IMG/VR virus record: IMGVR_UViG_3300037258_000590
Span: 62,001-126,000 of that record
DNA: 64,000 nucleotides
Direction: 5' to 3' (one strand)
Shown here: in pieces, positions 10,556-60,112 of the stretch
Numbering within the stretch: position 1 is the stretch's first letter
How the letters are laid out: the number at the start of each line of letters is the position of its first letter
Notes under the pieces: generated by a model
Databases searched by the model: none
Told to the model about the DNA's origin: nothing
Seen by the model: the letters and a program-made list of their open reading frames with translations, nothing else
Made by a program: the position numbers and the translations under genes

Positions 10556-10566
10556 CGCAGTAACCA

Positions 10567-10639
10567 GGCCCCATGGAGCTACTGGCTAAGCCACCGGTCT
10601 TTCACACCGGAGAAGACGGGTCGGAACCGTCTGGGGTCA
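10567..10639 (+). tRNA. tRNA-Glu(TTC), atypical T-loop
   Basis: Loop CT TTC AC; T-loop GTCGGAA. Confidence 0.75.
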
Positions 10640-10640
10640 C

Positions 10641-10714
10641 TGCGGGGTGCAGCAGTTAGGTAGCTGACTGGGCTCATAATCCAGAAGACGCGGGTTCAAA
10701 TCCCGCCCCCGCTA
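10641..10714 (+). tRNA. Initiator-like tRNA-fMet(CAT)
   Basis: 1-72 mismatch, GCGGGG acceptor, CTGGG CTCATAA TCCAG anticodon arm. Confidence 0.85.
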
Positions 10715-10718
10715 CTAT

Positions 10719-10789
10719 TCTGGTATCCGTTAACGGTAAACGAGCAGACTGTTAATCTGTCCCTCCTGGTTCGAATCCAGGTACCAGAG
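10719..10789 (+). tRNA. tRNA-Asn(GTT)
   Basis: Loop CT GTT AA. Confidence 0.88.
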
Positions 10790-10865
10790 CGAGGTGCCGC
10801 AAGCCGCTGCACGAAACCGCCACGTGGCCTCATACGGCGGGGAATTGCCCTTTCGCAGCACCCTA

Positions 10866-10942
10866 GGTGACGTAGCACAACCGGCCAGTGCCCCACCCTG
10901 TCACGGTGGATTGTGCGGGTTCGAATCCCGTCGTCATCGCCA
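10866..10942 (+). tRNA. tRNA-Asp(GTC) with encoded CCA
   Basis: Loop CT GTC AC. Confidence 0.92.
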
Positions 10943-10950
10943 GCAATCAG

Positions 10951-11270
10951 GCCGGGTGCAGCCTGCCGCGGATCGTCGCGTGCGCACCCTGACAGCGGGT
11001 GCCGGCGGCGGCAGAGCGGTCTTACGGCTGCACCCGGCCCTCACCAGGTAAGAGCCGCTCACGGCCCGGACCTGACACACGAACGCAAGACTCAGGGCGG
11101 CTGGTTACGCGATCGCACCCTGACATCCGGAACTGGCCGGAACGATCAACCTGAGTGACCGGCCCGAGACGGCGGCGCCATTCCCAGGGATTAAGCGGGA
11201 CAGCTTTCCCGGACCGCGTAAAGCACAGACCGCATTCCGGCCCCAGCAGGCATTGCACACGCCGGAAGCT
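10951..11270 (+). ncRNA. Unassigned structured RNA candidate with possible pseudoknot
   Basis: 13-bp stem gccgggtgcagcc/ggctgcacccggc; internal gagcggtcttac is complementary to downstream gtaagagccgctc. Confidence 0.4.
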
Positions 11271-11277
11271 TACATAC

Positions 11278-11349
11278 GGGCGGCTGGCGCAGCGGCAGCG
11301 CGCTACCCCGACACGGTAGAGGCCACTGGTTCAAATCCAGTGCCGCCCA
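11278..11349 (+). tRNA. tRNA-Val(GAC)
   Basis: Loop CC GAC AC (C33). Confidence 0.92.
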
Positions 11350-11361
11350 CGTAGTATCCAT

Positions 11362-11434
11362 GCGCCCGCAGCACGACGGATCGTGCAGACGGCTACGAAC
11401 CGGAAGGGTGGGAGTTCGAATCTCTCCGGGCGCG
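11362..11434 (+). tRNA. tRNA-Arg(ACG)
   Basis: Loop CT ACG AA. Confidence 0.88.
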
Positions 11435-11445
11435 CGTAATACCAA

Positions 11446-11517
11446 GGGCGGTTGGCGCAGCGGCAGCGCGGCTCGTTCACACCGAGTAGGCCGCAGGTTC
11501 GATCCCTGCACCGCCCA
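11446..11517 (+). tRNA. tRNA-Val(CAC)
   Basis: Loop TT CAC AC. Confidence 0.92.
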
Positions 11518-11591
11518 CTAGCTGACGAGAAGCAGGATTGCGGTCGCGACGGCGACCAGGGGTCCGAGTCCCCGTTCTCGTCAGCCCACAT

Positions 11592-11665
11592 GGCGGCCGA
11601 AGCCAAACAGGCTGAGGCACTGGACTGTGAATCCAGGTAAGCGGGTTCAAGTCCCGCCGGTCGCC
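11592..11665 (+). tRNA. tRNA-His(GTG)
   Basis: G-1/C73, loop CT GTG AA. Confidence 0.92.
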
Positions 11666-11669
11666 CCGC

Positions 11670-11750
11670 GGGTCGTTGGCAGAGCGGACGATTGCGCCTG
11701 GCTGTAAACCAGGTTCTCCGGACACGGTGGTTCAAATCCATCACGGCCCA
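11670..11750 (+). tRNA. tRNA-Tyr(GTA)
   Basis: Loop CT GTA AA, variable arm. Confidence 0.92.
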
Positions 11751-11764
11751 CGTAACCCGGTGGC

Positions 11765-12007
11765 ATGATGGCTGTCGTGGATATCACGATCATGTACCGC
11801 AAAGACGCCGACCACCCGCAGCACGGCGGCAGCGGCGGTGAGGAGTGGCGCATCGAAGCCGTAGGCATCGAAGGCTATGACGGCGACCGGTGCGTTCAGG
11901 CTGTGCTGGATGCGGGCGCGCTGATGAAATCCGCCGCGTACGGAAATGCGCGGTTGATCGTGGAAGGGCTGCGCGGCGCCAGCCCGGATGCTGTGGCAGG
12001 TGCATGA
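11765..12007 (+). CDS. Hypothetical protein
   Basis: 80-aa ORF in tRNA-array gap. Confidence 0.45.
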   Translation: MMAVVDITIMYRKDADHPQHGGSGGEEWRIEAVGIEGYDGDRCVQAVLDAGALMKSAAYGNARLIVEGLRGASPDAVAGA

Positions 12008-12086
12008 ATGCGCACCGGCCTGGGACTGCTGGCAAGTCTGCAGCCGGAAGCCCAGGCCCTGCCGTTAGCACAGCACGTATGGCAGG

Positions 12087-12353
12087 ATGACCCGCATGGA
12101 ACTGACGCAGCTGGCCCCGCCGGGCCACGGGCTTATCTCCAAGCTGACCGCTGACGATGGCGATTTCCGGGTTACCTGGGATCCCGGCAACCCGGAGGAG
12201 ACCGAGAACGCCCGGCAGGCTTTCGCTGACCTGCGCCGCAGCGGGTACGCAATCCACCGGGTGGAAGGCGGGCGCCGGGAGGTGATCCGTGAGTTCGATC
12301 CGGCGGCCGGAGCCATGCAGCTCGTGGCGCACCGGCCGAACCGCGGCGGCTTA
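12087..12353 (+). CDS. Small phage protein apparently ending in Gly-Gly; expected stop reads TTA
   Basis: ...RVTWDPGNPEE...EVIREFDPAAGAMQLVAHRPNRGG then TTA TC ATG of the next gene; the frame stays open to 12845. Confidence 0.5.
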
Positions 12354-12355
12354 TC

Positions 12356-12985
12356 ATGCCCGCGGGAGAGTTCCGGTACTGCCGTGATCCGGAAGCTGCG
12401 TGGCTGGCCAGCGGCAACAGCATGCCCGCAAGTACGGACCCGGCAACCAGGTTCTTCACGTGGTCTGCTGCTGGTTCCGGTGTCATCTGCACGACCGGGA
12501 ATACCGCATCCGGTACGGTTATCGTTTACAGCCCGGACGGGAGTGCAGGCCTGTGGTACGGCACGTTCCCTTCCGGCCCTGGCTCAGGACTACCGCAGGC
12601 ACAGATTGAGCAGCTGGTCGCGGAACACCAGCGCGAGGCGGAAAAAGCTGCCGCGCGCCGCCAGGTCGCTGATGCCAGGGCGCACCAGTTGCTGCTGTCC
12701 CTGCTCGATGAAATCCAGGCAGCGGATTACGCGCAGCATGGCTGGTTCGAGCTGCGCGGCTCGGCAGGCGGCTGGTGGCGCATCCGCGGAGCCGGCCAGG
12801 CGGGGAACGTTGATGAACTGGAAGCTTCAGGCGGCGAGCGGATAGCGTCCTGGTGCTGTCATCCGCCAGGCGCCCTGCCGGACGCTGACGCGTACATCGC
12901 CCAGATGCTGCACCTGGCTGCTGACGAGCCTGGGTTCCGGGCCGCCGGCAACAGGACCGGGCGGCGCCAGCCTGCCGCAGCGTGA
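12356..12985 (+). CDS. Hypothetical phage protein
   Basis: RAHQLLLSLL...FELRGSAGGWWRI...CCHPPGALPDAD..AQMLHL..DEPGF. Confidence 0.6.
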   Translation: MPAGEFRYCRDPEAAWLASGNSMPASTDPATRFFTWSAAGSGVICTTGNTASGTVIVYSPDGSAGLWYGTFPSGPGSGLPQAQIEQLVAEHQREAEKAAARRQVADARAHQLLLSLLDEIQAADYAQHGWFELRGSAGGWWRIRGAGQAGNVDELEASGGERIASWCCHPPGALPDADAYIAQMLHLAADEPGFRAAGNRTGRRQPAAA

Positions 12986-12989
12986 TCTA

Positions 12990-13061
12990 GCGCCTATCGT
13001 CCAACGGACAGGGCTCTGGCCCCCGAAGCCAGCGATGCAGGTTCGAATCCTGCTGGGCGCG
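12990..13061 (+). tRNA. tRNA-Arg(CCG)
   Basis: Loop CC CCG AA (C33). Confidence 0.9.
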
Positions 13062-13134
13062 CTGGTACCCCGTGAAGCCTCGTGCTAGCTGCGGGCTCCG
13101 CGTGAACGCCCCGCTGCTGAACGGGGTACCTCCT

Positions 13135-13207
13135 GGCGGCATGGCTGAACGGACAGGCCCGCGTCTGCAAAACGTGCGCTAACCCGGTTCGACTCCGGGT
13201 GCCGCTT
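13135..13207 (+). tRNA. tRNA-Cys(GCA)
   Basis: Loop CT GCA AA, U73. Confidence 0.9.
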
Positions 13208-13211
13208 CTGA

Positions 13212-13284
13212 TGGCTCGTAGTCCAGCGGACGAGGGCACCGGCCTCCTAAGCCGGGGGCGCGGGTTCGATTCCCGCCGGGCCAG
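13212..13284 (+). tRNA. tRNA-Arg(CCT)
   Basis: Loop CT CCT AA. Confidence 0.9.
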
Positions 13285-13322
13285 CAATTCCAGGGCGCTC
13301 ACGCTATGATCGTGGTTCCGTA

Positions 13323-43832: not shown

Positions 43833-44180
43833 CTATCCGGCCTGGACCCAGCGGCCTTCCCGCACCCAGCCGTGATCTCCGCAATGGCACCGGATCGACG
43901 GGTCCAGGGTGAGCGGCTCCCAGCTGAGAACCTGCCAGGTAACCCGCGGGCAGAAGACGCGCCTGACTTCCGGCGTGTCCGGATGCAGGGCGCCTTCGCA
44001 GTACCCGCGTTCCCGGCAGTGCGGGTGATCATCGCCGGGCAGCAGCGGATGACGGATAAGCGCGAGCGCCTTCTCGATATCCGGCACGCCGGCATACTGC
44101 GGGTTCAGCTGCCGGTCCGGTTCCCAGCTGGCCCAGTGCAGCACGTGACCGTGCCCGAGATCGAGATCGCGGTCGGTCAC
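43833..44180 (-). CDS. Hypothetical phage protein
   Basis: PLTLDPSIRCHCGDHGWVREGRW. Confidence 0.6.
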   Translation of the reverse strand: MTDRDLDLGHGHVLHWASWEPDRQLNPQYAGVPDIEKALALIRHPLLPGDDHPHCRERGYCEGALHPDTPEVRRVFCPRVTWQVLSWEPLTLDPSIRCHCGDHGWVREGRWVQAG

Positions 44181-45011: not shown

Positions 45012-47819
45012 TCACCGGACAGACCTTCCCGGATCGTAGTGGCGGCGGCGCTTGTTCAGTGCCCACAAGGCGAGCGTGGCTGCGGTGACCGGCGTGATGT
45101 CGGATTCGCTGTCGCGCCGGGACCAGGCTTTGCCGCCGTCGCCGACGACGCGGGTCTCGGCCCTGGCCACCGCGTGCCACATGCCAGGGGCGTTTTCCTG
45201 GCCGAAGTGGATCAGGCGCTTCCCGGGAACGGTGCTGCGGACGCTGGCGACAATGAAAGCGAACGCGGCTGCTTCGTCCGCGCTGGATGCGGTCAGGACC
45301 TCGATGCCGGCTTTGACCGCATCATCGATCAGGCCGGCGGCAGGCCCGTTCTTCGGCATCGCGATGACAATCGGCCGCCAGGCCTTGCGCAGCTCGGTCA
45401 GCCGTGGGATGACCCAGGAGACGCCCTCGCGGTGGCAGCCTTGCGGGATCTCCGCAACCGGCCGCTCGGGCTCGGCCAGGGCGAGACGCACGGCCAGCGC
45501 CTCCGGCGTGCCAGCGCGGGCGGCCATCATGGCGGCGATCTCGGTCTCGATCCCGGCGCGGGAGGGCCCGGGTACGGCAGGCCGGTACCAGGCAGCGGCG
45601 ATCGACGCGCTGAGCATGTCGGGGTCGACATCCACAGCGAACGCGATAGGCCGTGTCGTGCCGCCGGGATCGGCGATGGTGCAGGCTTCCCACTGCTCGC
45701 GGGAGATCACCGACCAGGCTTCGTCTTCGGTGGGCCAGTCGCCGACGCCGAGCCGTTCCCGGTCGAAGGCCTGGGCGCTCATCGCCTCCATTTCCTTGGC
45801 GACATGCTGGACGGAAATCCGGGTGCCGAGCGCGGGATTGGCCTTGGCCCAGGACCGCGGGTCATCCCGGTCGTCATGCAGGGCGCAGGTGACGTAGTGG
45901 TTGGTGACCCGGCCGCGCAGCTCATCTCGCGGGCAGCTGTCCAGGTGCGGGCTGACCGACCATTCAGCGCCCATCAGGCTGGCGTCATTGCGGAGCACCC
46001 GGCGCCGTACCGAGCCGAGCTGGACGGAATCCTTATAGCCGGCGGAGGCGGTGTAGATCATCTGCGGATTAGGGACGGCGCTCATGGTCGGCATCGACGC
46101 GCCGACCTGATCGTCGCTGAGGATCATAGCTTCGTCGTAGATCACCGCGTCGGCGGTGAATGACCGGCCGGAACCACGAGAGCGGGCCAGGAACCGGAGC
46201 CGCGGGGTGATCGAGCGGCGGATCATCGCGCCCGTCGAGCCGAAGATCAAGGTGGGGACCGAGCGCAGTTCGATGGCCTCGTCGCCATGGGACGTGGTGA
46301 TCGACTTGACCCGCTTGCGCAGCTCGTCGTAGGCGGTGATGGTGTCGCGGACCCGGCGGAAGTGCTCAGCGGCGGCCTTGAATTCGTGCGCGGTATGGAT
46401 CAGCATTTTCTCGCCGAACACGAACAGGCCGCCGAGTTCCCGGACTTCGAGGCAGTTGTGCGTCGGAGTGAACGTGTGCCCGAGCAGGAACACGCCGTCT
46501 TTCGCGACGACGGTAATGCACCGGACCGGCACCGAGGGCACCGGCCGGACATCAGTGATGCTCATCAGCTCATGCCGCCGGGATACGGGGAACCGCCAGC
46601 GCTCGGCCTTGCGAGGGAGAGCGAACGGGTTAAACGAGGGCGTCCACAAGAACCTGGCCTGATCCCGGTGCGGCTGGCCATTCAGTGACACAGGGCGATC
46701 CCGGCGCGCTACCCGGATACCGAGACTCCGGGCCAGCCGGTGGAATCCCTCCGCGATCCGGGGATTCGACGCCGTGAACTCCGCCTGGGGCGATTTGTTC
46801 GTGATGGCGATAGAGCCATCTGAGTCCATCAGCCCGCGCAGCAGCGCCAGCCGCTGAACCGGGGAGGCCGTCAGGTAGATCTCCGGGATGTGCTTATCGC
46901 CCCAGACGCCTAGGCGCCGGCAGCGTGACTCGAATCCGTCGCGCATGCGGCCGAGGGTGATGCGAACATCCCATACGCCGCGCAAGGCCTGCTCCCGGGC
47001 ACTGGCCTTTGCTCCAGCTGCGCTCACGAGTGCCTGAACCCATTCCAGGTCTGCCTTGCCGCACGTAATGACAGGACCTTTCGCGTACCCGTCGCCCAGC
47101 CAGTATCCGAGCAGGTACGGGTCAACTGGCAAGGCAGCCTCGGGTGTATCGGGCACCGCGTCGCACCGCACCCGGTAACGGTAGGCCTTCCGGCCCGTAT
47201 CCCGCGGGGGGAAGGCGAAGTCGCCGGCGATTCTTCCCGTAGTGAGATCCTGCCACCGGCCCCTGGTGTCCCTGACGTGCCAGAGGTGATCTTCATCAGC
47301 GGTATACACCGACCCGTCAGTAAACGTCACGGCGTAACACGGCCGGTCCCGGAAAACGCCGGTTACCGCCGTGACCCGCGTCGGCTGGCCGTCCGATCCG
47401 TACACGAAATCTCCGGGGAGCAGAGCACCTATTGCCTGCCAGCCCCGGTTTACTGTCAGTACCGGTGTAATGACAGAAATCGCCTGATTTTTCCCGTTCT
47501 GGCGGCTGACGATGAGCATGCACTCGAATGCGGCCCATTTGCCGTCCGGCTGGGTACCGCAGGCCTCGGTCAGCCACCATTGCTGCCACGGGTCCAGGTC
47601 GTAGCCGAAACCGGCACCCCAGTCCAGCAGGTCGCTGCTCTGGTAATCCCCGCACCCGCAGGCGTAATCGCGGTTGTCACAGGAAACGCAGGCCGGGTTC
47701 TTCTCCCGGTGCCTCGGCGGCGCGGTCCAGAATCTCGGCTCCTGGCTGCCGGTGAGCCCGCGCAGGACCTGGCCGCCAGGCAGGATAAAGTCCGGCACGA
47801 CCCGCAGCGTGACAGGCAT
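45012..47819 (-). CDS. terL: Terminase large subunit with intein
   Basis: DPWQ, Walker A SRQNGK, HTAH, GRSFTAD.VIYDEAM, ANPALG, FDRERLG, FAVDVDPD, SDITPV.A. Confidence 0.93.
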   Translation of the reverse strand: MPVTLRVVPDFILPGGQVLRGLTGSQEPRFWTAPPRHREKNPACVSCDNRDYACGCGDYQSSDLLDWGAGFGYDLDPWQQWWLTEACGTQPDGKWAAFECMLIVSRQNGKNQAISVITPVLTVNRGWQAIGALLPGDFVYGSDGQPTRVTAVTGVFRDRPCYAVTFTDGSVYTADEDHLWHVRDTRGRWQDLTTGRIAGDFAFPPRDTGRKAYRYRVRCDAVPDTPEAALPVDPYLLGYWLGDGYAKGPVITCGKADLEWVQALVSAAGAKASAREQALRGVWDVRITLGRMRDGFESRCRRLGVWGDKHIPEIYLTASPVQRLALLRGLMDSDGSIAITNKSPQAEFTASNPRIAEGFHRLARSLGIRVARRDRPVSLNGQPHRDQARFLWTPSFNPFALPRKAERWRFPVSRRHELMSITDVRPVPSVPVRCITVVAKDGVFLLGHTFTPTHNCLEVRELGGLFVFGEKMLIHTAHEFKAAAEHFRRVRDTITAYDELRKRVKSITTSHGDEAIELRSVPTLIFGSTGAMIRRSITPRLRFLARSRGSGRSFTADAVIYDEAMILSDDQVGASMPTMSAVPNPQMIYTASAGYKDSVQLGSVRRRVLRNDASLMGAEWSVSPHLDSCPRDELRGRVTNHYVTCALHDDRDDPRSWAKANPALGTRISVQHVAKEMEAMSAQAFDRERLGVGDWPTEDEAWSVISREQWEACTIADPGGTTRPIAFAVDVDPDMLSASIAAAWYRPAVPGPSRAGIETEIAAMMAARAGTPEALAVRLALAEPERPVAEIPQGCHREGVSWVIPRLTELRKAWRPIVIAMPKNGPAAGLIDDAVKAGIEVLTASSADEAAAFAFIVASVRSTVPGKRLIHFGQENAPGMWHAVARAETRVVGDGGKAWSRRDSESDITPVTAATLALWALNKRRRHYDPGRSVR
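46455..47483 (-). mobile_element. Class 3 intein with LAGLIDADG endonuclease in TerL (343 aa)
   Basis: Starts with Ala (AISV); block B DEDHLW, block F VRCITV, block G PTHN, Cys+1; LLGYWLGDG and LLRGLMDSDG. Confidence 0.88.
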
Positions 47820-48418: not shown

Positions 48419-48760
48419 TTACGCCTTGTCCGCGGGCGCATCAGCCCGGCCGTCACTGTCTAGCCTGCCAGGCCGAGGCCACTCCCGGGTGCAGGCCCGG
48501 CACAGGTGCCGCAGGTGATTATCGTCCGGCGCGGATCCGCAAGCGTGCTCGCCGTCTTCAGCTGTACAGGTCTTTCCCATGGCCCGGCGCTGGGCAAGCA
48601 CGAACTCGATGTCGCGCAAATCGTGCTCGGTCAGGCCGGCGATATGCCGGTTCCGGGCCAGGACCAGTTCCAGCTTGCCGCCGCAGCCGTGCTCAAGGAT
48701 CTCAACGTGCACGGGGTTACCCGATCCCAGCCCATGCCCCGGCCTGGATGCCGATGGCAA
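48419..48760 (-). CDS. Hypothetical protein
   Basis: C...H.C...H.CRAC motif; start uncertain. Confidence 0.4.
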   Translation of the reverse strand: MPSASRPGHGLGSGNPVHVEILEHGCGGKLELVLARNRHIAGLTEHDLRDIEFVLAQRRAMGKTCTAEDGEHACGSAPDDNHLRHLCRACTREWPRPGRLDSDGRADAPADKA

Positions 48761-48898
48761 GCACCCCGGCCTGGATGCCGAACGTCACGGCCATCATGCC
48801 GCCGGTGACAAACGCGGCAATGCCAGCACGGAGCATGATCAGGGCAATGACGGAGAACGCGAAAACGACGTGAGGACTGCGCGCGACGGCGAGCGTGA

Positions 48899-50185
48899 TC
48901 ATGCCAGGGCCTCCGAAGCGGCCAGCTTGCGGTCCGGGCCGGGGCCGCAGGAACGGAGCACCAGCGGGGCCTGAGCGACCCGGGCCAGGTCATGTGCCAG
49001 GACATCGGGGCTGCTAGCAGGCTCATCCTCGTAAACCGGCTTGCTGCCGGACAGAACCCGGGTGAACCCTTCCTGCCAGGGCAGGTTCCGTGGCGGCCCA
49101 GGATGCAGCCGCGTAATGCGAGTGCCGTACAGGCCGGTGTAGGCGGTGCACAACCGGAGCCGGCTCACGTCGGCGTCCAGGTGGGTGACGGCGAGCCCGT
49201 CGATGCCGCCGCTGGCCTGGACGGCGTAGTCCAGGGCCAGCGCGTCAGGGTGGCCGAGCCGGAACGCGCCCTGCCACTGACCGGCCGTGTTGCGCGGCTC
49301 TGCGAAGTCCAGTGCCGGGTCCTCGGTGACGAACGGGCCAGCACCGTGCCGGGTCATGTAGGAGCGGGTGACCCCGAGCACGTAACCTTGCTCGTCCTGC
49401 TCGGCAAGCAGCGTCTGAGCGTTCGCCGAGGTAGTGGTGGACCAGGTGGTATACGGATGCCAGCCGCGCCATTCGTCCAGCAGGACGCCCTGAGCGCCCT
49501 CGAAGATGACAGGGCCCTGCTGCAGCAGCTGGCTCAGGTGCGGGCTGCCGTCCACCAGGCGGATACGCGCGGCGAACGCCGCGTACGCTTCGGTGAGATC
49601 CGCGGCGCTGGGTACGCCCCCCAGAGGGCCGGCATCCTCGGCGAGCAGCAGCCGGGCCCAGGTCAGCTTGCGGCGCAGCTCCCAGGCCGGGCCGGCGCAG
49701 TCCCCGGCGCGGACCGCGGCGTCAGGGTGCTCCAGCGCGCACCGGGCGGTCTCCCCGATGCCCACGCCGCACGACCCGTGCCGGCCGGCACCGCGGGCGT
49801 TTTCCCGGGCCTGGTTAGCAGCGGCGTGGTACGGCGTGGTGATCAGGGCTTCGCGGTCCACGGCGATCAGGTCCAGCGGCGCGGGCACGCCGATAGCGGC
49901 CAGGTGCGCGGCTTCAGCGGCCAGCGCGAGCGGGTCGAGCATCATGTAGCGGCTCAGGAACGTCGGCACGCCATGCAGGGTGCCGGACCCGAACTGCGCG
50001 AAAACGTGCTCGCGCATGACGTGAATCACGTTGTGGCCAGCTTGCGCGCCGCCGTTGTGCCGGACCACGGCGGCGACGGGCCGCTCCCCCCGCAGCGCGG
50101 TGCCGCGAGGGGAGCACAGCCAGTCGGTGACCGAGCCCTTCCCCTCGTCACCGAACCCGAGTCCGGTAACTATGACATGAGTCAC
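48899..50185 (-). CDS. Adenylosuccinate synthetase-like protein
   Basis: GLGFGDEGKG, RHNGGAQAGHNV, HGSCGVGIG, EGAQGVLLD, PYTTWSTT, TRHGAGP. Confidence 0.82.
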   Translation of the reverse strand: MTHVIVTGLGFGDEGKGSVTDWLCSPRGTALRGERPVAAVVRHNGGAQAGHNVIHVMREHVFAQFGSGTLHGVPTFLSRYMMLDPLALAAEAAHLAAIGVPAPLDLIAVDREALITTPYHAAANQARENARGAGRHGSCGVGIGETARCALEHPDAAVRAGDCAGPAWELRRKLTWARLLLAEDAGPLGGVPSAADLTEAYAAFAARIRLVDGSPHLSQLLQQGPVIFEGAQGVLLDEWRGWHPYTTWSTTTSANAQTLLAEQDEQGYVLGVTRSYMTRHGAGPFVTEDPALDFAEPRNTAGQWQGAFRLGHPDALALDYAVQASGGIDGLAVTHLDADVSRLRLCTAYTGLYGTRITRLHPGPPRNLPWQEGFTRVLSGSKPVYEDEPASSPDVLAHDLARVAQAPLVLRSCGPGPDRKLAASEALA

Positions 50186-51150
50186 AGCCGGTCGCTGCCT
50201 GAGCCGCTGCCGTACAGGTCAGCTGGCGCGGCGGCACTGACGACCTGGCCGCCGCGGGCCGAGCCGAGCGTGGCCAGCGCCTTGCCGACGACACCGCCGG
50301 CGGTGGACCCGACATCGTGCAGGTCGGACAGGCCGCCGTCCAGGTCAGTGGCGTCTTCAGCCAGGCCGATGGTCAGCGCGATGGTTTCGGCTACGGCGTC
50401 AAGGTCGTCCAGCGCGATGACGTTCTGGCCGAACAGCTTGCGCCAGAACTCCAGCACCTGCGCGTCACCAGCGTGAGCGGTCCCGGCAGGGATGATGAAG
50501 TAGACGTCCCAGCGTTGCAGGACCTCTGCGACGATGGTCTCCAGCGGGATGTCCTCGCTCAGCTCGTCGCCGATGATCCTGGCTACCTCGCGTGCTTTGA
50601 CCTGCGGGTAGGCCATCTCGTCCCCGATGAGGAAGCAGTATCCCCGCCGGCGGCGCTTGTCCCAGGCGTCAGTCTGGACGTGCCGGGCGAGCCAGTACAG
50701 GAACAGCTCGTACGATTCGGTTTTCTGGCCGCCGCCGTTGCCTTCGAGATAGATCTTGCCGAGAACTTCCTCCATCGCGTTACCAGACTCGAACTCTCCT
50801 ACCTGCAAGGGGGCACGATCAGTGGTAGCGTCCCCGATCGCCCCGAACATGACCTGCGGGTGCGCGACGTAACCCTTGAGCAGCAGCAGGCCGAGCAGCG
50901 CCGGCAGTTTAGCCTGAAGCCCGCGCGGCACCTTGTCCATGGACCCGGTGACGTCGAACGGCACGGCAACCGGCGTCGACTCGGGGTGCTCCGCGGAGTC
51001 CCGGGATTCCCTGTCCGCACCTCTCGGGTCGAGATCAGCATGCACCTTCGTGGCCCCGCTGTCGCTGTACGCGAAGTCGCTGACGCTATGCATGCTCCGG
51101 TAGGCCTTAGCGGCGTCATACGTGCTGGCTGACCAGCTTCCTCGTCCCAT
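50182..51150 (-). CDS. VWA-like domain protein
   Basis: FDVTGSM MIDAS-like motif, AIGD, GGGQKTESYE, FLIGDE. Confidence 0.72.
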   Translation of the reverse strand: MGRGSWSASTYDAAKAYRSMHSVSDFAYSDSGATKVHADLDPRGADRESRDSAEHPESTPVAVPFDVTGSMDKVPRGLQAKLPALLGLLLLKGYVAHPQVMFGAIGDATTDRAPLQVGEFESGNAMEEVLGKIYLEGNGGGQKTESYELFLYWLARHVQTDAWDKRRRRGYCFLIGDEMAYPQVKAREVARIIGDELSEDIPLETIVAEVLQRWDVYFIIPAGTAHAGDAQVLEFWRKLFGQNVIALDDLDAVAETIALTIGLAEDATDLDGGLSDLHDVGSTAGGVVGKALATLGSARGGQVVSAAAPADLYGSGSGSDRL

Positions 51151-52109
51151 TACGGCGTCCTTCCTGCAGTTGTCCCCGTAGCCGGGATGGCGAACGGGCG
51201 GAACGTGCGCGGCCCCCAGAGCCGCTCGATCAGGTCATCAAGGTCGGCAAGCGCGGCCCAGGCGTCCAGGTCCGGGATGAGCTGACAGCCCCGGGCGAAC
51301 GCGGCCAGCTGACGTGGCAAGACGGCCGGCCAGATAAGCCAGGTCATCAGTTTCGCGGCCATGGCCACGTCGGTGCCGGTCCTGGCGGTCTTGCTGTCCA
51401 GGACTGCGGCCGGGTACCAGGAACGCCAGGCGCGGGGCACGGCGGTGAGCTGATGCTGCGGCCCGGCGCCGGAATAACACCAGTCGGCCAGGACAAGGCC
51501 GTGCTCGGCAGGGTGGATCAGGACATGCGGCGGCAGCACGGCGCCGTGGACGAGGCCGGCCCGGCTGGCGCCGCCGAGCGCGAACAGCAGCCGCCGCCAC
51601 ATCCAGGCGGCATCCCGCGGGTCCAGGCCGCCAGGATAGGCAGTATGCACGGTTCCGAGCATGACGAAGCCGTTCAGCTCGGCGATCGTGTTCACCTGGC
51701 GGGTCATGCCGGTGCCCGGGTCCTTCTGCCGCACGGCGGTGACCAGGGCAGGATAGAACGCGCGGACCTTGACGGGCGCGTCGCTGGCGAGCGTGCGCAG
51801 AGCACGGGCTTCGGCGCGCATGAGATCGCTGTCGGCCGGGTCGCGGGGCATCTTGGCGAGCTGGCCCGGCCCGGCCCGGTACAGGTTGGCGATATCACCG
51901 CGGTACGCGAGATCGCTGTCTCCCCGGGCGGCGCCGGCTTTCAGCTCGCCGAGCCGCTTGAACGCAGCCTCAGCGGCCGGATTGCCGGGATTGGTGTCCG
52001 GGTGCACGGCGGCGGCCAGCGACCGGAAGCCTGGTTTGCCGTCACCGAACAGGTCGGCGGCCACTCGCGCGGCCATGATCAGCTTGATCGCGTCACCGGC
52101 GGCCATCAT
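51150..52109 (-). CDS. J-domain (HPD) plus divergent protein-kinase-like protein
   Basis: AAVHPDTNPG..AEAAFKRL; VHGAVLPPHVLI and LADWCYS in kinase-motif positions. Confidence 0.65.
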   Translation of the reverse strand: MMAAGDAIKLIMAARVAADLFGDGKPGFRSLAAAVHPDTNPGNPAAEAAFKRLGELKAGAARGDSDLAYRGDIANLYRAGPGQLAKMPRDPADSDLMRAEARALRTLASDAPVKVRAFYPALVTAVRQKDPGTGMTRQVNTIAELNGFVMLGTVHTAYPGGLDPRDAAWMWRRLLFALGGASRAGLVHGAVLPPHVLIHPAEHGLVLADWCYSGAGPQHQLTAVPRAWRSWYPAAVLDSKTARTGTDVAMAAKLMTWLIWPAVLPRQLAAFARGCQLIPDLDAWAALADLDDLIERLWGPRTFRPFAIPATGTTAGRTP

Positions 52110-52834
52110 CAGTCCTCGCTTCCCAGGCGGGCCTGTGCAGCAGCCTGCATTACCCCCGCGGCGATCATCGCGCCGCCGCCCCGGCGCAGCACGATGCCCG
52201 TATCGCCCATGCCGGCCGGCGTTGCCCCGTATTCTGCGGACCTGGCCGGGAGGACCAGCATCTGGTCCAGGGCCGCAGCCAGCTCCTCTTCAGACAATCG
52301 CAGCATCCCGGCACCCGCACCCGGAAGATTTCCTTCCGCAGCCATCTGCAGGATGGCCGCGAACGCCTCGCAGTTACCCGTCGCGTCGTTGACCGGATGG
52401 TGATCGTGCCTGGTCCGGCGGAAAGACTTCCACTTCTGGGTGTTGCCCCAGGCCCCGTTCAGGCCCGCCCAGAAATCCGAGATCCGCCGGGCCGAATGGC
52501 CGAACGGATTAGCCACGCCCGCGGCGTCGCACATGCCGGCGATCCACATGAAGTCATACGCCGGGTTATCCGAGACCATCACCGGGCGGTCGCCCTCGCA
52601 CACCGCGGCTACCCACCTGATCAGATCGGCGGCTACCTCGAAGTTCCCGTTGAGCCGCTTGCCGACCACGGGGACAGCCGGGTTCTCCGGGTCCGGAGAG
52701 GACTCGAACAGCTGGCCGTAGAAGCTGACCCGGCTGGCGTAGTGCACCGCGCCGAATTCGGTCAGCGTGCCGTTCACCGGGGAAGTCCCGCGGGCTTCGC
52801 AGTCCACGAAGACCAGGTTGCTCATCCGGGACAT
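52109..52834 (-). CDS. DEDD 3'-5' exoribonuclease-like protein
   Basis: FVDCE, SDNPAYD, HHPVNDA. Confidence 0.75.
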   Translation of the reverse strand: MSRMSNLVFVDCEARGTSPVNGTLTEFGAVHYASRVSFYGQLFESSPDPENPAVPVVGKRLNGNFEVAADLIRWVAAVCEGDRPVMVSDNPAYDFMWIAGMCDAAGVANPFGHSARRISDFWAGLNGAWGNTQKWKSFRRTRHDHHPVNDATGNCEAFAAILQMAAEGNLPGAGAGMLRLSEEELAAALDQMLVLPARSAEYGATPAGMGDTGIVLRRGGGAMIAAGVMQAAAQARLGSED

Positions 52835-52857
52835 GCGCACTCCTCCTGAGCTGGCGG

Positions 52858-53412
52858 TCATGGCGTTTCCAGGGCCAGCATCTCGCGGGTCATCATCAGG
52901 GCGACGCCGAGCCAGTTGTGCCCGGCCCAGGTCTTGCCGGCCTGGGGCCACCAGGGCAGCTCGCGAGACCATTTCGGATGCCCTTCGGCGACGGCCCCCC
53001 AGTCAGTGTCGCCATGCCAGTTGCCTTCTACGAGGACCCGCTTGGCGGTGGCGAGCAAGGCGGCGCACAGGTCCGGGTGCTGGGTGTACTTGCAGAGCTG
53101 AACCTGGAGCATGACCGCGCCGCGGAGCTGATCCCAGCCGGGCCGGAGCCGGATCGCGCGGCCCATGCGCCTGGCCTGCTGCCAGGTTCCCAGGCGGGCG
53201 ATCCGCTCACGTTCCTCCCAGTCCAGGCTCTTGGCCCCGTGGAAGGCGTGCTCAGCGCTCGGGTACACGGTGTTCTCGAACCAGATCACGCACGGGTGCG
53301 GGTTGGCCAGGAACGCGTGCTCGCCGCGGAAGCTGATGACGGGTTCCGCGGCGAGGCCGCCGGCAGCACGGACGGCAGCCGCAGCGACATCAAACCGCAT
53401 GACCTCGTTCAC
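52858..53412 (-). CDS. NADAR (YbiA-like) family protein
   Basis: FLAN..PC, YPSAEHAFHGAK, LRPGWD, LLAT..LVEGN..DTDWG, GHNWLG.ALM..R. Confidence 0.88.
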   Translation of the reverse strand: MNEVMRFDVAAAAVRAAGGLAAEPVISFRGEHAFLANPHPCVIWFENTVYPSAEHAFHGAKSLDWEERERIARLGTWQQARRMGRAIRLRPGWDQLRGAVMLQVQLCKYTQHPDLCAALLATAKRVLVEGNWHGDTDWGAVAEGHPKWSRELPWWPQAGKTWAGHNWLGVALMMTREMLALETP

Positions 53413-53604
53413 GGGAATCCTGCCCCGGCGATCAGGACGAGCCCGATGAAAACGCAGACCGCAATAAACCCGGTGATCTCAGGTTCGGCAGCGCATGCGC
53501 ACAGGCCGCGCCGGATCTTGTCCCGGACGCACAGCAAGCAGGCGCGTTCCGTCACGGGCGCCTTTTCCTGGCTGTTGCCGCTCATGCTGTCGTGGCGTCC
53601 TTCC

Positions 53605-54405: not shown

Positions 54406-54507
54406 GGATAACCCCTCCGGGCGTTTTTCCGGGCTGGCGGGAAACGGCAGTTCTGCGGGCCGCCGGAGATGCTGCTCACGCAAAGCCAGCAGTCTCCGGC
54501 GGGCCGC

Positions 54508-54670
54508 CAGGATCCGCGCAATGCGGATAACGCGGATCACAGTGCAGGCCCGCGGCCGGAAGCCTGGCTTGCTGTCACCGAACAGGCCGGCGGCCACTCG
54601 CGCGGCGGTTCCGCGCTGAGGCCGCCGCCAGTACGGACGGCAGCCTCAGTGACATCAAACCGCAGGATCT
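54508..54670 (-). repeat. Mosaic of diverged copies of the NADAR and J-kinase gene starts plus a 55316-55349 segment
   Basis: Similar to 53340-53412, 52020-52072 and 55320-55349. Confidence 0.7.
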
Positions 54671-54673
54671 CGT

Positions 54674-55243
54674 TCACCCAGGTCCCTGCCCCCGGCCTTC
54701 TGGCTGAGCCTCCTGGGGCGGGAACTGAACGATGAATGCCCGCCTGGCATTCCAGGCGGCTTTTTTGATCTTGTTCAGCGGCAATACAGCCGCCAGCCAC
54801 CGGCCGTACAACTCAAGAGAGTAGGCGTTCTCGTGCCGGATCTGGTACACGGCGACCCATGTCCGGTCAGACAGGCTCGGGCAGCCGCGAAGACTGATGT
54901 CGGTATTGCGGTTTGACTCGCTCCAGCACAGGTCCAGATTAGCAGCTGAGGCAATCTGGCCCAGGCTGCCGGTCTTGAAGTGGAACACGGTGATGATCCA
55001 CTGCTGGAAGTAGCCGTGCTGGCCGCACGGCACCCACCAGACGCTGTTGCCCTCGCCGGGTTTACTCGAATGCCCGTTCGCTTTAGCGCCGGCGCACCAT
55101 TTCCCGTGGTCAAACGAGATCCTGCCTGCATACGTGGTTCCGGACACGCCGGGTGCTGCGCTCGCGGCGCTCGTACCCGCAACGGCCAGGCTAGTGACCA
55201 GGGCAGCACTGAGTGCCGCCGCGGCGAGAGATTTCTTGAACAT
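54674..55243 (-). CDS. Secreted ricin-B-like protein
   Basis: Signal peptide; C...C..QQW and C...C pattern. Confidence 0.55.
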   Translation of the reverse strand: MFKKSLAAAALSAALVTSLAVAGTSAASAAPGVSGTTYAGRISFDHGKWCAGAKANGHSSKPGEGNSVWWVPCGQHGYFQQWIITVFHFKTGSLGQIASAANLDLCWSESNRNTDISLRGCPSLSDRTWVAVYQIRHENAYSLELYGRWLAAVLPLNKIKKAAWNARRAFIVQFPPQEAQPEGRGQGPG

Positions 55244-55344
55244 GATTCTCCTGTCTTGTACAGCGGATGCGCGGGCACCTCCGGGCTAGCAGGCGACTCC
55301 TGCCCGGCGGGCCGCCGTGATCCGCGCGATGCGGATAACGCGGA

Positions 55345-55938
55345 TCACGGCACGGGTACGTGTCTCGTCCACCCCTTGGCGAAAACGAGGCCGCGGTTGG
55401 CGGAGCGGCCATTGATCTTGGTGCCGCGCTTGAGCCACTGGGCTGGCCCGGCACCGTTGAAGCAGGAGAGCCAGCGGCCAGCGGTGTTCTTGATGCCGTT
55501 CGCGGCACCTTCTCTAACACCGCCGGTGACGACGAGACCCTGGCGGGGATCGAGGTGCTTGCGATGTGAGCAGTCATACGTCACTGCGCGGCCCGCGTCG
55601 TCACCGGCCTGCCCGGCCACGCAGATGTCCGGGTCGGCGCTGAGCCACAGCAGCAGGACACCGCCGATCTGGATGCCGGTCCAGAGCTGGAGCCCGTCGC
55701 CGTTCTTGCAGCCGCCGATGAACACCGCGGCGCCAGGATGCGGCGACGTGGCTTCCAGGCACAGCAGCTTGTGGCCGGCCGGATGGATCTGGGTCAGGTC
55801 GGAGTGGTAGGGGGCTACGGCCGCCGGGACAGCTGAGGTGGCTGCCGTCGCGCTCGCGGCGGCGGCGGTTCCGGCAGCCGTCCCGCCAGCGAGCAGGGCA
55901 GCGCTGAGTGCCATGGTGACAGCGGTCTTCCTGAACAT
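55345..55938 (-). CDS. Secreted ricin-B-like protein
   Basis: Signal peptide; LCLEA...GGC...QLW, ICV...YDC. Confidence 0.6.
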   Translation of the reverse strand: MFRKTAVTMALSAALLAGGTAAGTAAAASATAATSAVPAAVAPYHSDLTQIHPAGHKLLCLEATSPHPGAAVFIGGCKNGDGLQLWTGIQIGGVLLLWLSADPDICVAGQAGDDAGRAVTYDCSHRKHLDPRQGLVVTGGVREGAANGIKNTAGRWLSCFNGAGPAQWLKRGTKINGRSANRGLVFAKGWTRHVPVP

Positions 55939-58400: not shown

Positions 58401-58666
58401 CTAGTCCGCGCGGCACGGTAACCGGACTGCCCGCCGCCGTCTGCTATCACCCTGATCCAGAGATCAACAGGGAGGTCATCGCCGACGCGACCGACGCCGA
58501 GCGCGCGGACCTCGCCGCGGGCTACTCGCCCCGCCGCTGGCGCTGCATCTGCGGTACCGAGCATTCGCGCGGCCACGTCGCCGGGACTATCGGCGTTCAC
58601 CGCTGCCTGGCGTGCGGCTACACCGGTACCGGGGGCGTGATGTCCGAGGACGAGGGGCGGCCGTGA
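58397..58666 (+). CDS. Small Zn-ribbon protein
   Basis: CICG..H..HRCLAC; 4-nt overlap. Confidence 0.5.
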   Translation: MTSPRGTVTGLPAAVCYHPDPEINREVIADATDAERADLAAGYSPRRWRCICGTEHSRGHVAGTIGVHRCLACGYTGTGGVMSEDEGRP

Positions 58667-59280
58667 TGAGCAATGACCCCGGGCCCCTTCCCGGCCACCT
58701 GAAGTCGATGATCACCGGTCTTGTATCCGGCATCGAGCCCACCGATGACCTCGGGCGGGAGCACCGCCGGAACGCCCTGTCGTGGCTGGCCCGGACCGAT
58801 GACATCTTCCGGCGGGTGAAGCCGGTCACCCCGTCACCCCATCTGGTGTCGTACTTCCTGCTTGTCGACCGGCCGGCCGGGAGCGTGCTCCTCTGCGACC
58901 ACCGGCTGTCCGGCCTGTGGCTGCCGGCCGGGGGGCATGTCGAGCCCGGCGAGCACCCGTTCGACACCGTTCGCCGCGAGGCCGCCGAAGAACTCGGCGT
59001 CACTGCGCAACCCGACCCGGCATCCGGGGCCAGCCCGTTCCTTCTCACGATGACCGAGACCGTAGGTCCGCCCGCGACGCGGCACGTGGACGTCAGCCTC
59101 TGGTTCGCCTTCGCCGGTCACATCAGGCAGCCTCTGCATCCATGTCCACGTGAATTCGCTCAGGTCCGGTGGTGGGCGGGCGCGGAACTGGCGAACGCTG
59201 ACCTCGGCCGGTTTGAACCGCACTTGGTGCGTGCCCTGGGCGCGCTAAGCCTCACCTCGCCCGCTGGACGTACACGTTGA
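58666..59280 (+). CDS. NUDIX hydrolase
   Basis: WLPAGGHVEPGE...RREAAEELG Nudix box. Confidence 0.88.
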   Translation: MSNDPGPLPGHLKSMITGLVSGIEPTDDLGREHRRNALSWLARTDDIFRRVKPVTPSPHLVSYFLLVDRPAGSVLLCDHRLSGLWLPAGGHVEPGEHPFDTVRREAAEELGVTAQPDPASGASPFLLTMTETVGPPATRHVDVSLWFAFAGHIRQPLHPCPREFAQVRWWAGAELANADLGRFEPHLVRALGALSLTSPAGRTR

Positions 59281-59347: not shown

Positions 59348-60112
59348 ATGGAAGTAGTGTTCGACGGCTGCTGCGGTGAGGGCGGCGGTACCCGCGGCTG
59401 GGCTGAATCTGGCGCCTGCGTGATCGGCTGCGATATCAACCCGGCCTGCCGGGATGGGTACCTGCGGAGCGGCGCCGCGGAGTTCGTCTGCGCCGACATC
59501 CTGGATGTCCTGGCCGACAAGTCGTTCATGAGCCGGTTTACCTTCGTAGCCTGCGGATTTCCTTGTCAGCGGTATTCCCAGATGACCCGCTGCCGGCCGG
59601 GGCTGCGCGATACGTACCCAGAGCTGATCACTCCGGGTAGGCCATTGCTGAACGCGCTGTCACTGCCGTACGTGATAGAGAATGTCGGTGCCGCGCGGCC
59701 GTGGCTCCAGGAGCCTGTCACGCTGTGCATGTGGATGCTCGGCCGCGAGACCTACCGGCACCGGCTGATCGAGGCCGGCGGCGGGTTCCAGCTGCGCCCG
59801 CCGCCGCCTCCGCCCCCTGGCTCGCCTGCGTGGCTCGCGCCGGCCGGCTGCGTGACCGCGCTGAGAGGTGCCCGCGTCAACCGCGAGTGCGGCTGGCCGC
59901 ACCCCGTGCCGACCGCCAGGGCCGGGCACTGGCAGCCGGGCAAGTTCGTCTCCGTCGCCGGGCATGAACGCAAAGAACCCGTCCAGCGCGTGATGGAGAT
60001 CGGGTGGATGAGCGACCGGGACGCCGTGGCCGAGGCGATCCCGCCCTACCTGAGTGCATGGATAGCAGGCCAGCTGCGCAACTGGCGCCAGGATCAGGAG
60101 GCAGCAGCATGA
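59348..60112 (+). CDS. DNA (cytosine-5)-methyltransferase, phage type
   Basis: DGCCGEGG, GCDI, GFPCQ, IENV, RHRLIE, EAIPP. Confidence 0.8.
   Translation: MEVVFDGCCGEGGGTRGWAESGACVIGCDINPACRDGYLRSGAAEFVCADILDVLADKSFMSRFTFVACGFPCQRYSQMTRCRPGLRDTYPELITPGRPLLNALSLPYVIENVGAARPWLQEPVTLCMWMLGRETYRHRLIEAGGGFQLRPPPPPPPGSPAWLAPAGCVTALRGARVNRECGWPHPVPTARAGHWQPGKFVSVAGHERKEPVQRVMEIGWMSDRDAVAEAIPPYLSAWIAGQLRNWRQDQEAAA

Follow-up and report, generated by a model that had tools for sequence, protein, structure and literature searches.

A 210-kb actinobacterial phage carries a conserved, uncharacterised cassette of three genes, encoding a J-domain protein-kinase-fold protein (a probable pseudokinase), a MIDAS-bearing VWA protein and a divergent relative of adenylosuccinate synthetase (AdSS), which is also found as a chromosomal operon in hundreds of actinobacterial species and whose AdSS-like member is neither an ordinary PurA nor the PurZ of Z-genome phages. 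No description of this cassette was found in the literature searched. The window that was analyzed comprises 64,000 nucleotides of the virus record IMGVR_UViG_3300037258_000590. An earlier note, made from the sequence alone, had described five tightly packed genes (AdSS-like, VWA, J-domain kinase, DEDD exonuclease and NADAR) with overlaps of 1-4 nt, and that observation holds: the five ORFs lie on the minus strand with a coding-like GC3 (0.80-0.88) and every motif that had been named is present, namely GDEGKG at residues 12-17 of the AdSS-like protein, HPD at 36-38, HGAVLPPH at 188-195 and DWCYS at 209-213 of the kinase-fold protein, next to a DVTGS MIDAS at residues 66-70 of the VWA protein. 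The features are collected in Table 1.

Table 1. Features of the cassette and its surroundings (positions within the window)
Position	Strand	Predicted product or feature	Length (aa)
48717..48902	-	ORF coupled to the stop codon of the AdSS-like gene	61
48899..50185	-	AdSS-like enzyme	428
50182..51150	-	VWA protein	322
51150..52109	-	J-domain protein-kinase-fold protein, probable pseudokinase	
52109..52861	-	Predicted DEDDh-type 3'-5' exonuclease, accessory	250
52858..53412	-	NADAR-domain protein, accessory	184
53409..53585	-	ORF with one hydrophobic, helix-like stretch, coupled to NADAR	58
54538..54677	-	Relic junction upstream of thyX	

The junctions, as read directly from the sequence, all overlap by 1 to 4 nt: ATGA (4 nt) between NADAR and the exonuclease gene, which places the start of the latter at 52861 and not at 52972, TGATG (1 nt) between the exonuclease and kinase-fold genes, TAATG (1 nt) between the kinase-fold and VWA genes, and GTGA (4 nt) between the VWA and AdSS-like genes. 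The coupled array is longer than the five genes of the note, as a 58-aa ORF, preceded by an RBS-like GGAAGGA and starting with ATG at 53585, overlaps the NADAR start by GTGA, whereas a 61-aa ORF (GC3 0.81, no Pfam match) overlaps the AdSS-like stop by ATGA. Small ORFs occupy positions comparable to that of the latter in relatives.

Conservation of the neighbourhood, which had been named beforehand as a way to refute the note's reading, showed that the AdSS-like gene is co-conserved with the VWA and kinase-fold genes far beyond chance. The three genes are adjacent and in the same order in around 200 cluster C mycobacteriophages, in related metagenomic phage contigs and in 76 of 80 sampled actinobacterial loci, out of at least 589 species genomes with a VWA relative. 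The conserved unit is thus a core of three genes and not of five, as the note had proposed. The putative exonuclease gene was absent from the 80 bacterial loci and from the cluster C phages, and NADAR occurred in 1 of the 80 loci, on the opposite strand, so that these two behave as lineage-specific accessories. They do recur around the VWA/AdSS-like pair in close phage relatives and in the unrelated Vibrio phage Va1, where a strong Rv2179c-like exonuclease sits next to the AdSS-like gene and a NADAR gene lies 1.1 kb upstream of the VWA gene, although both kinds of gene are common in large phages and their recurrence in Va1 could be coincidence. In the related phage contig L095 a NADAR gene lies directly upstream of the kinase-fold gene, and an 82% identical fragment of the exonuclease was found in L094, the closest relative. 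The window itself contains a relic of such an earlier NADAR-to-kinase adjacency: upstream of thyX, the first 71 nt of the NADAR gene are joined to nt 37-105 of the J-kinase gene, as evident from two direct repeats (89% and 87% identity) that were also recovered by tblastn.

The AdSS-like protein matches the Pfam family PF00709 with 192 bits, belongs to phrog_1211 and has bacterial PurA as its best PDB matches. Nevertheless, it scores far below the curated NCBIfam equivalog cut-offs, with 150.1 bits against 402 and 113.8 against 395.55 for PurA (NF002223 and TIGR00184, respectively) and 27.7 against 300 for PurZ (NF038379). In the phylogeny it falls on a long separate branch, in a third, VWA-linked clade (support 100/98) apart from the PurA of E. 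coli and Micromonospora and from the PurZ of phiVC8. Host-type bacterial genomes that carry the gene also keep a canonical purA, which scores around 610 bits on PF00709 against 191-213 bits for the paralog. Alignment with E. coli PurA showed that the bacterial long form of around 430 aa, the P-loop GD.GKG, the equivalents of the catalytic Asp13 and His41, of Gln224, which contacts O6, and of the guanine-recognition elements Asp333 and Ser414-x-Gly-Pro are kept, and the catalytic residues and GTP-binding elements are invariant in 33 members of the clade. In contrast, the positions that recognize L-aspartate in E. coli PurA (V273, T300, T301 and R303) are replaced by H, W, Q and A/K, the loop GATTGRRRR having become a conserved W-Q-G-x-F-R, and the contacts to the IMP 5'-phosphate (N38, T129 and R143) are replaced as well. 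The individual changes include N38 to Q, T129 to C, R131 to M/V/K, V273 to H, T300/T301 to W/Q, R303/R304 to A/F and K331 to H. The replaced set is itself invariant within the clade.

No Pfam model matched the VWA protein (phrog_2971), but its AlphaFold2 model (pLDDT 82.5) retrieved integrin I domains and vWF A1 as top hits in Foldseek (E about 1e-6, probability 1.0) and its neighbours in the ESM Atlas are named VWA. The MIDAS is complete: D66, T68, S70, D107 and D177 are invariant and T109 is present in 22 of 24 sequences. The N-terminus (M-G-x-G-x-W, with M1-G2 invariant) and a C-terminal R-L tail are also conserved. The kinase-fold protein (phrog_3043) has 1946 cluster representatives at E <= 1e-3. 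Its J-domain (around residues 1-62) stays below the Pfam cut-off in a single-sequence search (DnaJ, 22.6 bits against 27.8), but the N-terminus of the model is helical and HPD is conserved in 69-71 of 72 relatives. The AlphaFold2 model (pLDDT 93.6) retrieved eukaryotic-type kinases, PknB and the DnaJ-PKA chimera (8fe5/4wb7). Of the residues that characterize active Ser/Thr kinases, the beta3 Lys (K86) is present in 62 and the alphaC Glu (E100) in 72 of the 72 relatives and the DFG Asp in 52, but HRD reads H-G-A, with A in 64 and otherwise S, G or C, never D, and the Asn of the catalytic loop is His in 49 and Asn in 18. Where the note spoke of a kinase, the protein is therefore probably a pseudokinase.

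The NADAR protein scores 77.3 bits on PF08719 (cut-off 35.1) but remains below the YbiA-type equivalog cut-off (60.7 against 73.7), and it matches phrog_1017 and the PADLOC model PDC-M42C. For the putative exonuclease the matches are weak: the Rv2179c-like Pfam model gives 20 bits against a cut-off of 27, PDB entry 7t2s an E value of 0.027 and a PADLOC exonuclease effector model 1e-6, while DxE, D and H-x4-D motifs can be read in the translation. PADLOC has no model that matches the AdSS-like or VWA proteins.

In bacteria the cassette is headed by a gene of the Nudix/NrtR type, which was present in 77 of the 80 loci and had an intact Nudix box in two (L085 and L086) of the four copies inspected. 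It is accompanied by tandem operator-like palindromes (TTCTCA-N3-TGAGAA-like): at least two CTCA-N4-GAG sites occurred in 66 of 79 upstream regions, against 0.3% of control windows. This organization resembles that of auto-regulated nrtR operons (PMC2330246, PMC6800001), although the genes concerned are not those of NAD biosynthesis and the palindrome differs from the published mycobacterial site GTTTTCGA-N7-TCGAAAAC, so that responsiveness to ADP-ribose, the effector of characterised NrtR proteins (PMC2330246), is only an analogy. Neither the regulator nor the sites are present in the window, and the phage genome contains no NrtR wHTH, Hsp70, PurB or MazG domain. Neighbours related to ADP-ribose or nucleotide processing recur in separate lineages. 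Besides those in the window, L095 and Va1, these include PRTase, HAD and NMNAT/Nudix genes in Rhizobium phage RHph_TM30.

The interpretation given in the note, a nucleotide-signalling or counter-defence system rather than housekeeping purine synthesis, is partly supported by these data, as regards co-conservation with the VWA and kinase-fold genes and an enzyme that is not an ordinary PurA, whereas a counter-defence role would be an inference from context alone. The gene order, the bacterial regulator gene and its sites, the coexistence with purA and the pattern of kept and replaced residues follow directly from the analysis, whereas substrate, product, phenotype and all activities are inferred from sequence and context. 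We tentatively propose that the AdSS-like enzyme still uses GTP to phosphorylate the 6-oxo group of a purine nucleotide and then couples that carbon to an amine other than free aspartate, or acts on a differently substituted nucleotide, so that the product is not adenylosuccinate. The VWA protein would be its obligate partner, as it is the only one kept in every lineage, including proteobacterial phages, and may present the substrate, receive the product or be the substrate itself; a complex prediction for the two proteins gave no answer. The J-domain pseudokinase would recruit host DnaK; the phage encodes no Hsp70. By analogy with characterised NrtR proteins, which release DNA on binding ADP-ribose, the bacterial operon would respond to NAD+ breakdown. 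In this phage, NADAR and the putative exonuclease stand in the place of the regulator and its operators, and the module would then be expressed during infection to act on purine or ADP-ribose-linked nucleotide chemistry.

Two other readings are unlikely but survive to a similar extent. In the first, the AdSS fold serves as a GTP-driven switch or scaffold that, together with the VWA protein and the J-domain pseudokinase/DnaK, remodels or assembles a target, like MoxR-VWA pairs do, without making a new small molecule. VWA proteins commonly pair with P-loop NTPases (PMC7824862), and the conserved HPD, the degraded kinase fold and the heavily altered substrate-binding positions would agree with this. 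However, the equivalents of the catalytic base (Asp13), the acid (His41) and the O6-contacting Gln are invariant across the clade, which a pure switch would not need, and the invariance of the replaced pocket residues points to a defined ligand. In the second, which is compatible with the enzymology proposed above, the cassette is an actinobacterial anti-phage or stress-response system triggered by ADP-ribose, carried by phages to pre-empt or counter host NAD+-based immunity or to exclude rival phages. The distribution is indeed patchy (3 of 401 genomes in a phylum sample, 59 of 151 in a Micromonosporaceae sample), the cassette occurs in several unrelated phage groups, it sits beside NADAR, Nudix or exonuclease genes, the combination of VWA and kinase recalls the TerY-P triad, and a SIR2 gene and a TNT NADase-domain gene are nearby in contigs L091 and L085, respectively. 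On the other hand, besides the lack of PADLOC matches for the AdSS-like and VWA proteins, the flanks within Micromonospora are syntenic metabolic genes and not variable defence islands, which fits a physiological role as well as a conflict role, there is one copy per genome and no effector domain could be recognized.

Less likely still is an ordinary auxiliary metabolic gene, that is, a working PurA that raises AMP synthesis during infection amid unrelated neighbours. The clear Pfam domain, the PDB matches, the kept catalytic and GTP sites, the annotation 'PurA-like adenylosuccinate synthetase' in cluster C phages and the nearby thyX in the same array would favour it, but the failed cut-off, the separate branch, the replaced aspartate loop, the coexistence with a canonical purA, the linkage to the VWA gene in every lineage examined and the absence of purB from the phage argue against it. 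A PurZ-type enzyme that makes 2-aminoadenine, as suggested by the PurZ-style product name of phrog_1211 and some RefSeq records, can practically be dismissed, since the PurZ cut-off is failed, the catalytic Asp is kept where 100% of phage PurZ sequences (PMC12884076), as in the phiVC8 alignment, have Ser, the guanine-specific Asp and Ser are kept, PurZ is a short archaeal-type protein (343 aa in phiVC8) that travels with DatZ/MazZ/DpoZ (DatZ or MazZ/DutZ clearing dATP) whereas this phage has no MazG and no DatZ-like small HD protein (its only HD domain lies in a 598-aa frame around 76 kb away on the genome), and the clade is mostly chromosomal in bacteria.

Of the other systems that come close, the TerY-P triad likewise has a VWA protein encoded beside a protein-kinase-fold protein in a small cassette of patchy distribution, but in our case no phosphatase (PP2C in the triad) was found in the cassette in any lineage examined, the kinase fold lacks the catalytic Asp and carries a J-domain, the third partner is an AdSS-like enzyme and no PADLOC TerY-P model matched. 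A J-domain with HPD on the same polypeptide as a kinase fold is also found in the human DnaJB1-PKA chimera and in GAK/auxilin, yet here the fusion is natural, bacterial and viral in origin, and ancient, and its kinase half is probably inactive. The cassette is above all a chromosomal operon of actinobacteria, headed by an NrtR-type gene, that keeps its flanking genes within Micromonospora, and phages therefore appear to share a cellular module rather than carry a phage-specific weapon.

The 210,383-bp virus record from which the window (bases 62001-126000) was taken has direct terminal repeats and around 68% G+C, and its closest terminase relatives are found in cluster J mycobacteriophages, at 42% identity. 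Considering these properties together with the block of 39 tRNA genes and the intein within the large terminase (see the table below), the record represents a novel large actinobacterial phage known from a metagenome. We found that the five ORFs described in the earlier note are real and coding-like, with GC3 values of 0.80-0.88, and that every motif ascribed to them was present; the observation as such was thus confirmed. All four internal junctions overlap (ATGA, TGATG, TAATG and GTGA), the overlap between NADAR and DEDD moves the start of the latter to 52861, and two further small ORFs are coupled at the ends of the array. Profile searches against PFAM supported the AdSS (192 bits) and NADAR (77 bits) assignments, whereas the support for the J-domain (22.6 bits) and for an Rv2179c-like exonuclease (20 bits) was weak, and for the second gene nothing was recovered, even at E <= 10. 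The two uncertain proteins were folded using alignments of relatives. The kinase-like protein gave a model with pLDDT 93.6 that matches eukaryotic-type kinases, PknB of M. tuberculosis and, over its whole length, the human DnaJ-PKA chimera. The second protein gave a model with pLDDT 82.5 that matches integrin I domains and vWF A1, in agreement with its neighbours in the ESM Atlas and with an invariant D-x-T-x-S ... T ... D MIDAS. PADLOC contained no model for the AdSS-like or VWA proteins and yielded only a marginal PD-T4-6 match for the kinase-fold protein (E 0.002), and a megablast search of the locus against phage records returned nothing.

The conservation of the neighbourhood, which had been put forward beforehand as a check, was analyzed in phages, bacteria and metagenomes. 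In tblastn searches of sequenced phages the AdSS-like protein was recovered from 239 records, the VWA protein from 219 and the kinase-fold protein from 202. About 200 of each are cluster C (Bxz1-like) mycobacteriophages, in which the order is kinase (gp253), VWA (gp254), an 88-aa ORF and then the AdSS-like gene (gp256). The VWA/AdSS-like pair is also adjacent in Rhizobium phages of about 207 kb and in Vibrio phage Va1, and it occurs in an unannotated 176-kb phage scaffold as well. A word search recovered AdSS-like and VWA homologues at 55-80% identity on bacterial contigs of up to 7 Mb, mostly of Micromonospora, and a scan of a genome collection yielded at least 589 species genomes with a VWA relative, the best 80 of which come from Micromonospora, Actinoplanes, Catellatospora, Actinoallomurus, Actinomadura, Actinocorallia and Streptosporangiaceae. 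In 76 of these 80 loci all three genes are adjacent in the order of the window. One of the four exceptions is cut by a contig end, and in the other three the upstream Nudix gene abuts the VWA gene. These three bacterial loci (L042, L076 and L077) appear to lack the kinase-fold gene, the NrtR-type gene there directly abutting the VWA gene, so that the VWA/AdSS-like pair can exist without the pseudokinase in actinobacteria too. Representatives of the kinase-fold family that are only 33-37% identical to the query are still followed by a VWA-sized gene and an AdSS-like gene. An apparent kinase-VWA fusion in 34 loci proved to be an artefact of ORF extension, as an in-frame stop lies three codons before the VWA start.

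The other two genes of the window behave differently. The DEDD gene is found in 0 of the 80 bacterial loci and NADAR in 1 of 80, on the opposite strand, and both are absent from the cluster C locus. Among the close relatives of the window, however, one phage contig (L095) has NADAR directly upstream of the kinase-fold gene and another (L094) has the DEDD gene upstream. In the unrelated Vibrio phage Va1 a strong NADAR gene (166 bits) lies 1.1 kb upstream of the VWA gene and a strong Rv2179c-like exonuclease (128 bits) lies immediately downstream of the AdSS-like gene, although this exonuclease and the DEDD protein of the window are not detectably similar by BLASTP and share only the PFAM family, weakly on the side of the window. 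We therefore consider NADAR and DEDD to be recurrent accessories and not core genes. A 140-nt composite relic within the window joins part of the NADAR gene head to tail to part of the J-kinase gene, and represents a footprint of an earlier NADAR-to-kinase adjacency and of a rearrangement. It also creates the odd N-terminal extension of the thyX ORF, the real start of which is probably near the Met at residue 65. The earlier note's reading of the five genes as a nucleotide-signalling or counter-defence system rather than housekeeping purine synthesis is partly supported.

Coordinates of additional features in the window and in related phage loci
Sequence	Position	Strand	Feature
window	5540-13285	+	Block of 39 tRNA genes; ARAGORN calls include an odd tRNA-Tyr with anticodon ATA and a 91-nt tRNA-Ala
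window	43833-44180	-	Small DUF6527/BubE-family protein (23.2 bits, just under the 23.6 cut-off) near the terminase
window	45012-47819	-	Large terminase subunit (935 aa) interrupted by a LAGLIDADG homing-endonuclease intein; the related contig L095 has an intein-containing ThyX instead
window	54496-54540 and 55304-55348		45-nt direct repeat (93% identical) containing an inverted repeat (GATCCGCG ... CGCGGATC), at the 5' ends of two consecutive minus-strand genes; may be a phage regulatory element
window	54538-54677		140-nt composite relic just upstream of thyX
window	54538-54606		Part of the relic, 87% identical to nt 37-105 of the J-kinase gene
window	54607-54677		Part of the relic, 89% identical to the first 71 nt of the NADAR gene
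window	58612-59280	+	Nudix hydrolase with an intact Nudix box but no NrtR-type DNA-binding domain, on the opposite strand to the module; this gene and the next lie 5-6 kb from it
window	59348-60112	+	C5-cytosine methyltransferase-like gene following the Nudix gene, also on the opposite strand to the module
L086 (related phage contig)	14867-15217		Annotated with the same PFAM family (DUF6527/BubE), a few kb from the cassette
L003 (Vibrio phage Va1)	5222-5935		Conserved protein upstream of the VWA gene, unannotated, Met-rich
L002 (Rhizobium phage RHph_TM30)	4777-5568		Conserved protein upstream of the VWA gene (EVB93_016)

In bacteria the cassette takes a form of its own. In 77 of the 80 loci a gene encoding a Nudix plus NrtR-type winged-helix protein lies directly upstream, often overlapping the kinase-fold gene, and such a gene is also present in two phage contigs. 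Its Nudix box is intact in two of the four copies inspected, those of M. auratinigra (L085) and of phage contig L086. Upstream of this gene lie tandem copies of a palindrome close to TTCTCA-N3-TGAGAA, and at least two CTCA-N4-GAG sites occur within 140 nt in 66 of 79 loci, against 0.3% of control windows with even one. Characterised NrtR proteins are repressors that are released by ADP-ribose (PMC2330246), but considering that the published mycobacterial site is different (PMC6800001), the effector of the present regulator is inferred by analogy only. The phage has no NrtR-type domain, only an unrelated Nudix gene, and no such operator occurs within the window or the rest of the phage genome. 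The cassette was found in 3 of 401 genomes sampled across the phylum and in 59 of 151 sampled Micromonosporaceae, always as a single copy, and its flanks are conserved metabolic genes within Micromonospora but differ in other genera. In the chromosome of Micromonospora sp. NBC_01638 (L088) the canonical purA lies only about 9 kb from the AdSS-like paralog, and in M. auratinigra purB lies about 7 kb upstream with a TNT-type NADase-domain gene and a VapBC pair in between, which may or may not be coincidental.

Genomes that carry the cassette also carry a canonical purA, which scores about 610 bits on PF00709 against 191-213 bits for the paralog. The protein of the window scores 150 bits against the PurA equivalog cut-off of 402 bits and 27.7 bits against the 300 required for PurZ. 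In a maximum-likelihood tree all VWA-linked sequences, including the cluster C, Rhizobium and Vibrio phage proteins, form one clade (support 100/98) on a long branch, apart from PurA of E. coli and Micromonospora and from PurZ of phiVC8, and the window protein groups with phage contigs inside the actinobacterial radiation; warnings on long branches apply to the proteobacterial phage sequences and to PurZ. Alignment with E. coli PurA, combined with the conservation in 33 clade members, showed that G12-D13-x-G15-K16, H41, Q224, T239, R272, D333 and S414-x-G-P are kept. Other positions are changed to a different conserved residue: N38 to Q, T129 to C, R131 to M/V/K, V273 to H, S240 to W, T300/T301 to W/Q, R303/R304 to A/F and K331 to H, whereas R143 has no counterpart. 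According to the structural work on PurA by Honzatko, Fromm and colleagues, the kept set reportedly constitutes the GTP site and the phosphotransfer machinery, and the changed set the L-aspartate pocket and the contacts to the IMP 5'-phosphate.

The kinase-fold protein keeps the beta3 Lys (62/72) and the alphaC Glu (72/72), but HRD reads H-G-A and is never Asp, the catalytic-loop Asn is usually His, and the DFG Asp is present in 52/72, which is the pattern of a nucleotide-binding pseudokinase. The HPD of its J-domain is nearly invariant, and no Hsp70 was found in the phage; the expected partner is DnaK of the host. The VWA protein has an N-terminus, M-G-x-G-x-W, that is invariant in every lineage including the proteobacterial phages. 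Its first 30 residues are modelled with low confidence, and in 17 of 18 full-length homologues of the actinobacterial type a variable Gly/Ser/Pro-rich linker ends in ...R-L. A prediction of the complex between the AdSS-like and VWA proteins gave ipSAE values of 0.02 and 0.00, which is neither for nor against binding. No kinase-fold gene lies near the pair in the Rhizobium and Vibrio phage loci. There, a different protein of 237-263 aa without PFAM match is conserved upstream of the VWA gene, with 39% identity between Va1 and RHph_TM30. The Rhizobium phage also has a HIRAN-domain protein between this protein and the VWA gene, and a Ter-type PRTase (PF15610), a HAD protein and an NMNAT/Nudix gene a few kb upstream.

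The gene linkage, the paralogy, the residue pattern, the folds as modelled and the regulator with its sites are what the analysis has established, whereas the substrate, the product and the role in infection are inferred. Given these data we tentatively favour, with less than even confidence, a GTP-dependent purine-C6 ligase with a partner other than aspartate. In this view the enzyme would work with the VWA protein, would be coupled to DnaK through the J-domain pseudokinase and would be connected to ADP-ribose or NAD+-breakdown chemistry, a connection that rests on the recurrence of NrtR/Nudix, NADAR and, in Rhizobium phages, PRTase, HAD and NMNAT/Nudix neighbours. A non-ligase GTP switch with a chaperone-like role is unlikely but survives best among the alternatives, together with the equally doubtful view of the cassette as a conflict system, which overlaps with the favoured explanation. 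That the enzyme is an ordinary PurA is less likely still. PurZ is all but excluded, since the catalytic Asp is kept where all phage PurZ have Ser (PMC12884076), the protein is of the long bacterial type, and the phage lacks MazG, a DatZ-like protein and purB.

A more speculative reading, which we consider unlikely but not excluded by the evidence, is based on the conserved termini of the VWA protein and holds that the AdSS-like enzyme is a new kind of GTP-dependent purine-C6 ligase whose amine partner is not a free amino acid. The partner could be a macromolecular or ribosyl amine, and the most striking specific version would be the N-terminal glycine of the VWA protein itself, given that M-G-x-G-x-W is invariant from actinobacteria to Vibrio and Rhizobium phages and that this segment is predicted to be disordered; the result would be a protein-nucleotide conjugate. 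Alternatively, the product could be an N6-substituted adenine nucleotide that acts as a signal within an ADP-ribose-responsive pathway, with NADAR or Nudix enzymes as its erasers.

Full-text literature searches recovered no description of this cassette, and a survey of jumbo phages does not mention it (PMC7824862). A census of 2026 counted 481 phage AdSS homologues, of which only 147 are PurZ, and leaves the others undiscussed (PMC12884076). The 2008 description of NrtR (PMC2330246) lists the unknown regulon genes nrtX-nrtY in Streptomyces, Frankia, Kineococcus, Proteus and Hahella, which might or might not be related. Thus far two functions are known for the AdSS superfamily, that of PurA in the synthesis of AMP and that of PurZ in the 2-aminoadenine genomes of some phages. 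Our analysis points to a third, large lineage of this superfamily in a new, conserved gene context, connected to at least 589 bacterial species genomes with a VWA relative and to more than 200 sequenced phages, with a rebuilt substrate pocket and always paired with a VWA protein, and in nearly all of the sampled actinobacterial loci also with a J-domain protein, predicted to be a pseudokinase, and an NrtR-type regulator. There is a substantial chance that the chemistry is new as well. If the enzyme makes a new nucleotide or a protein-nucleotide adduct, this would add a new reaction to purine biochemistry, and it would also link ADP-ribose sensing, Hsp70 recruitment and phage infection.
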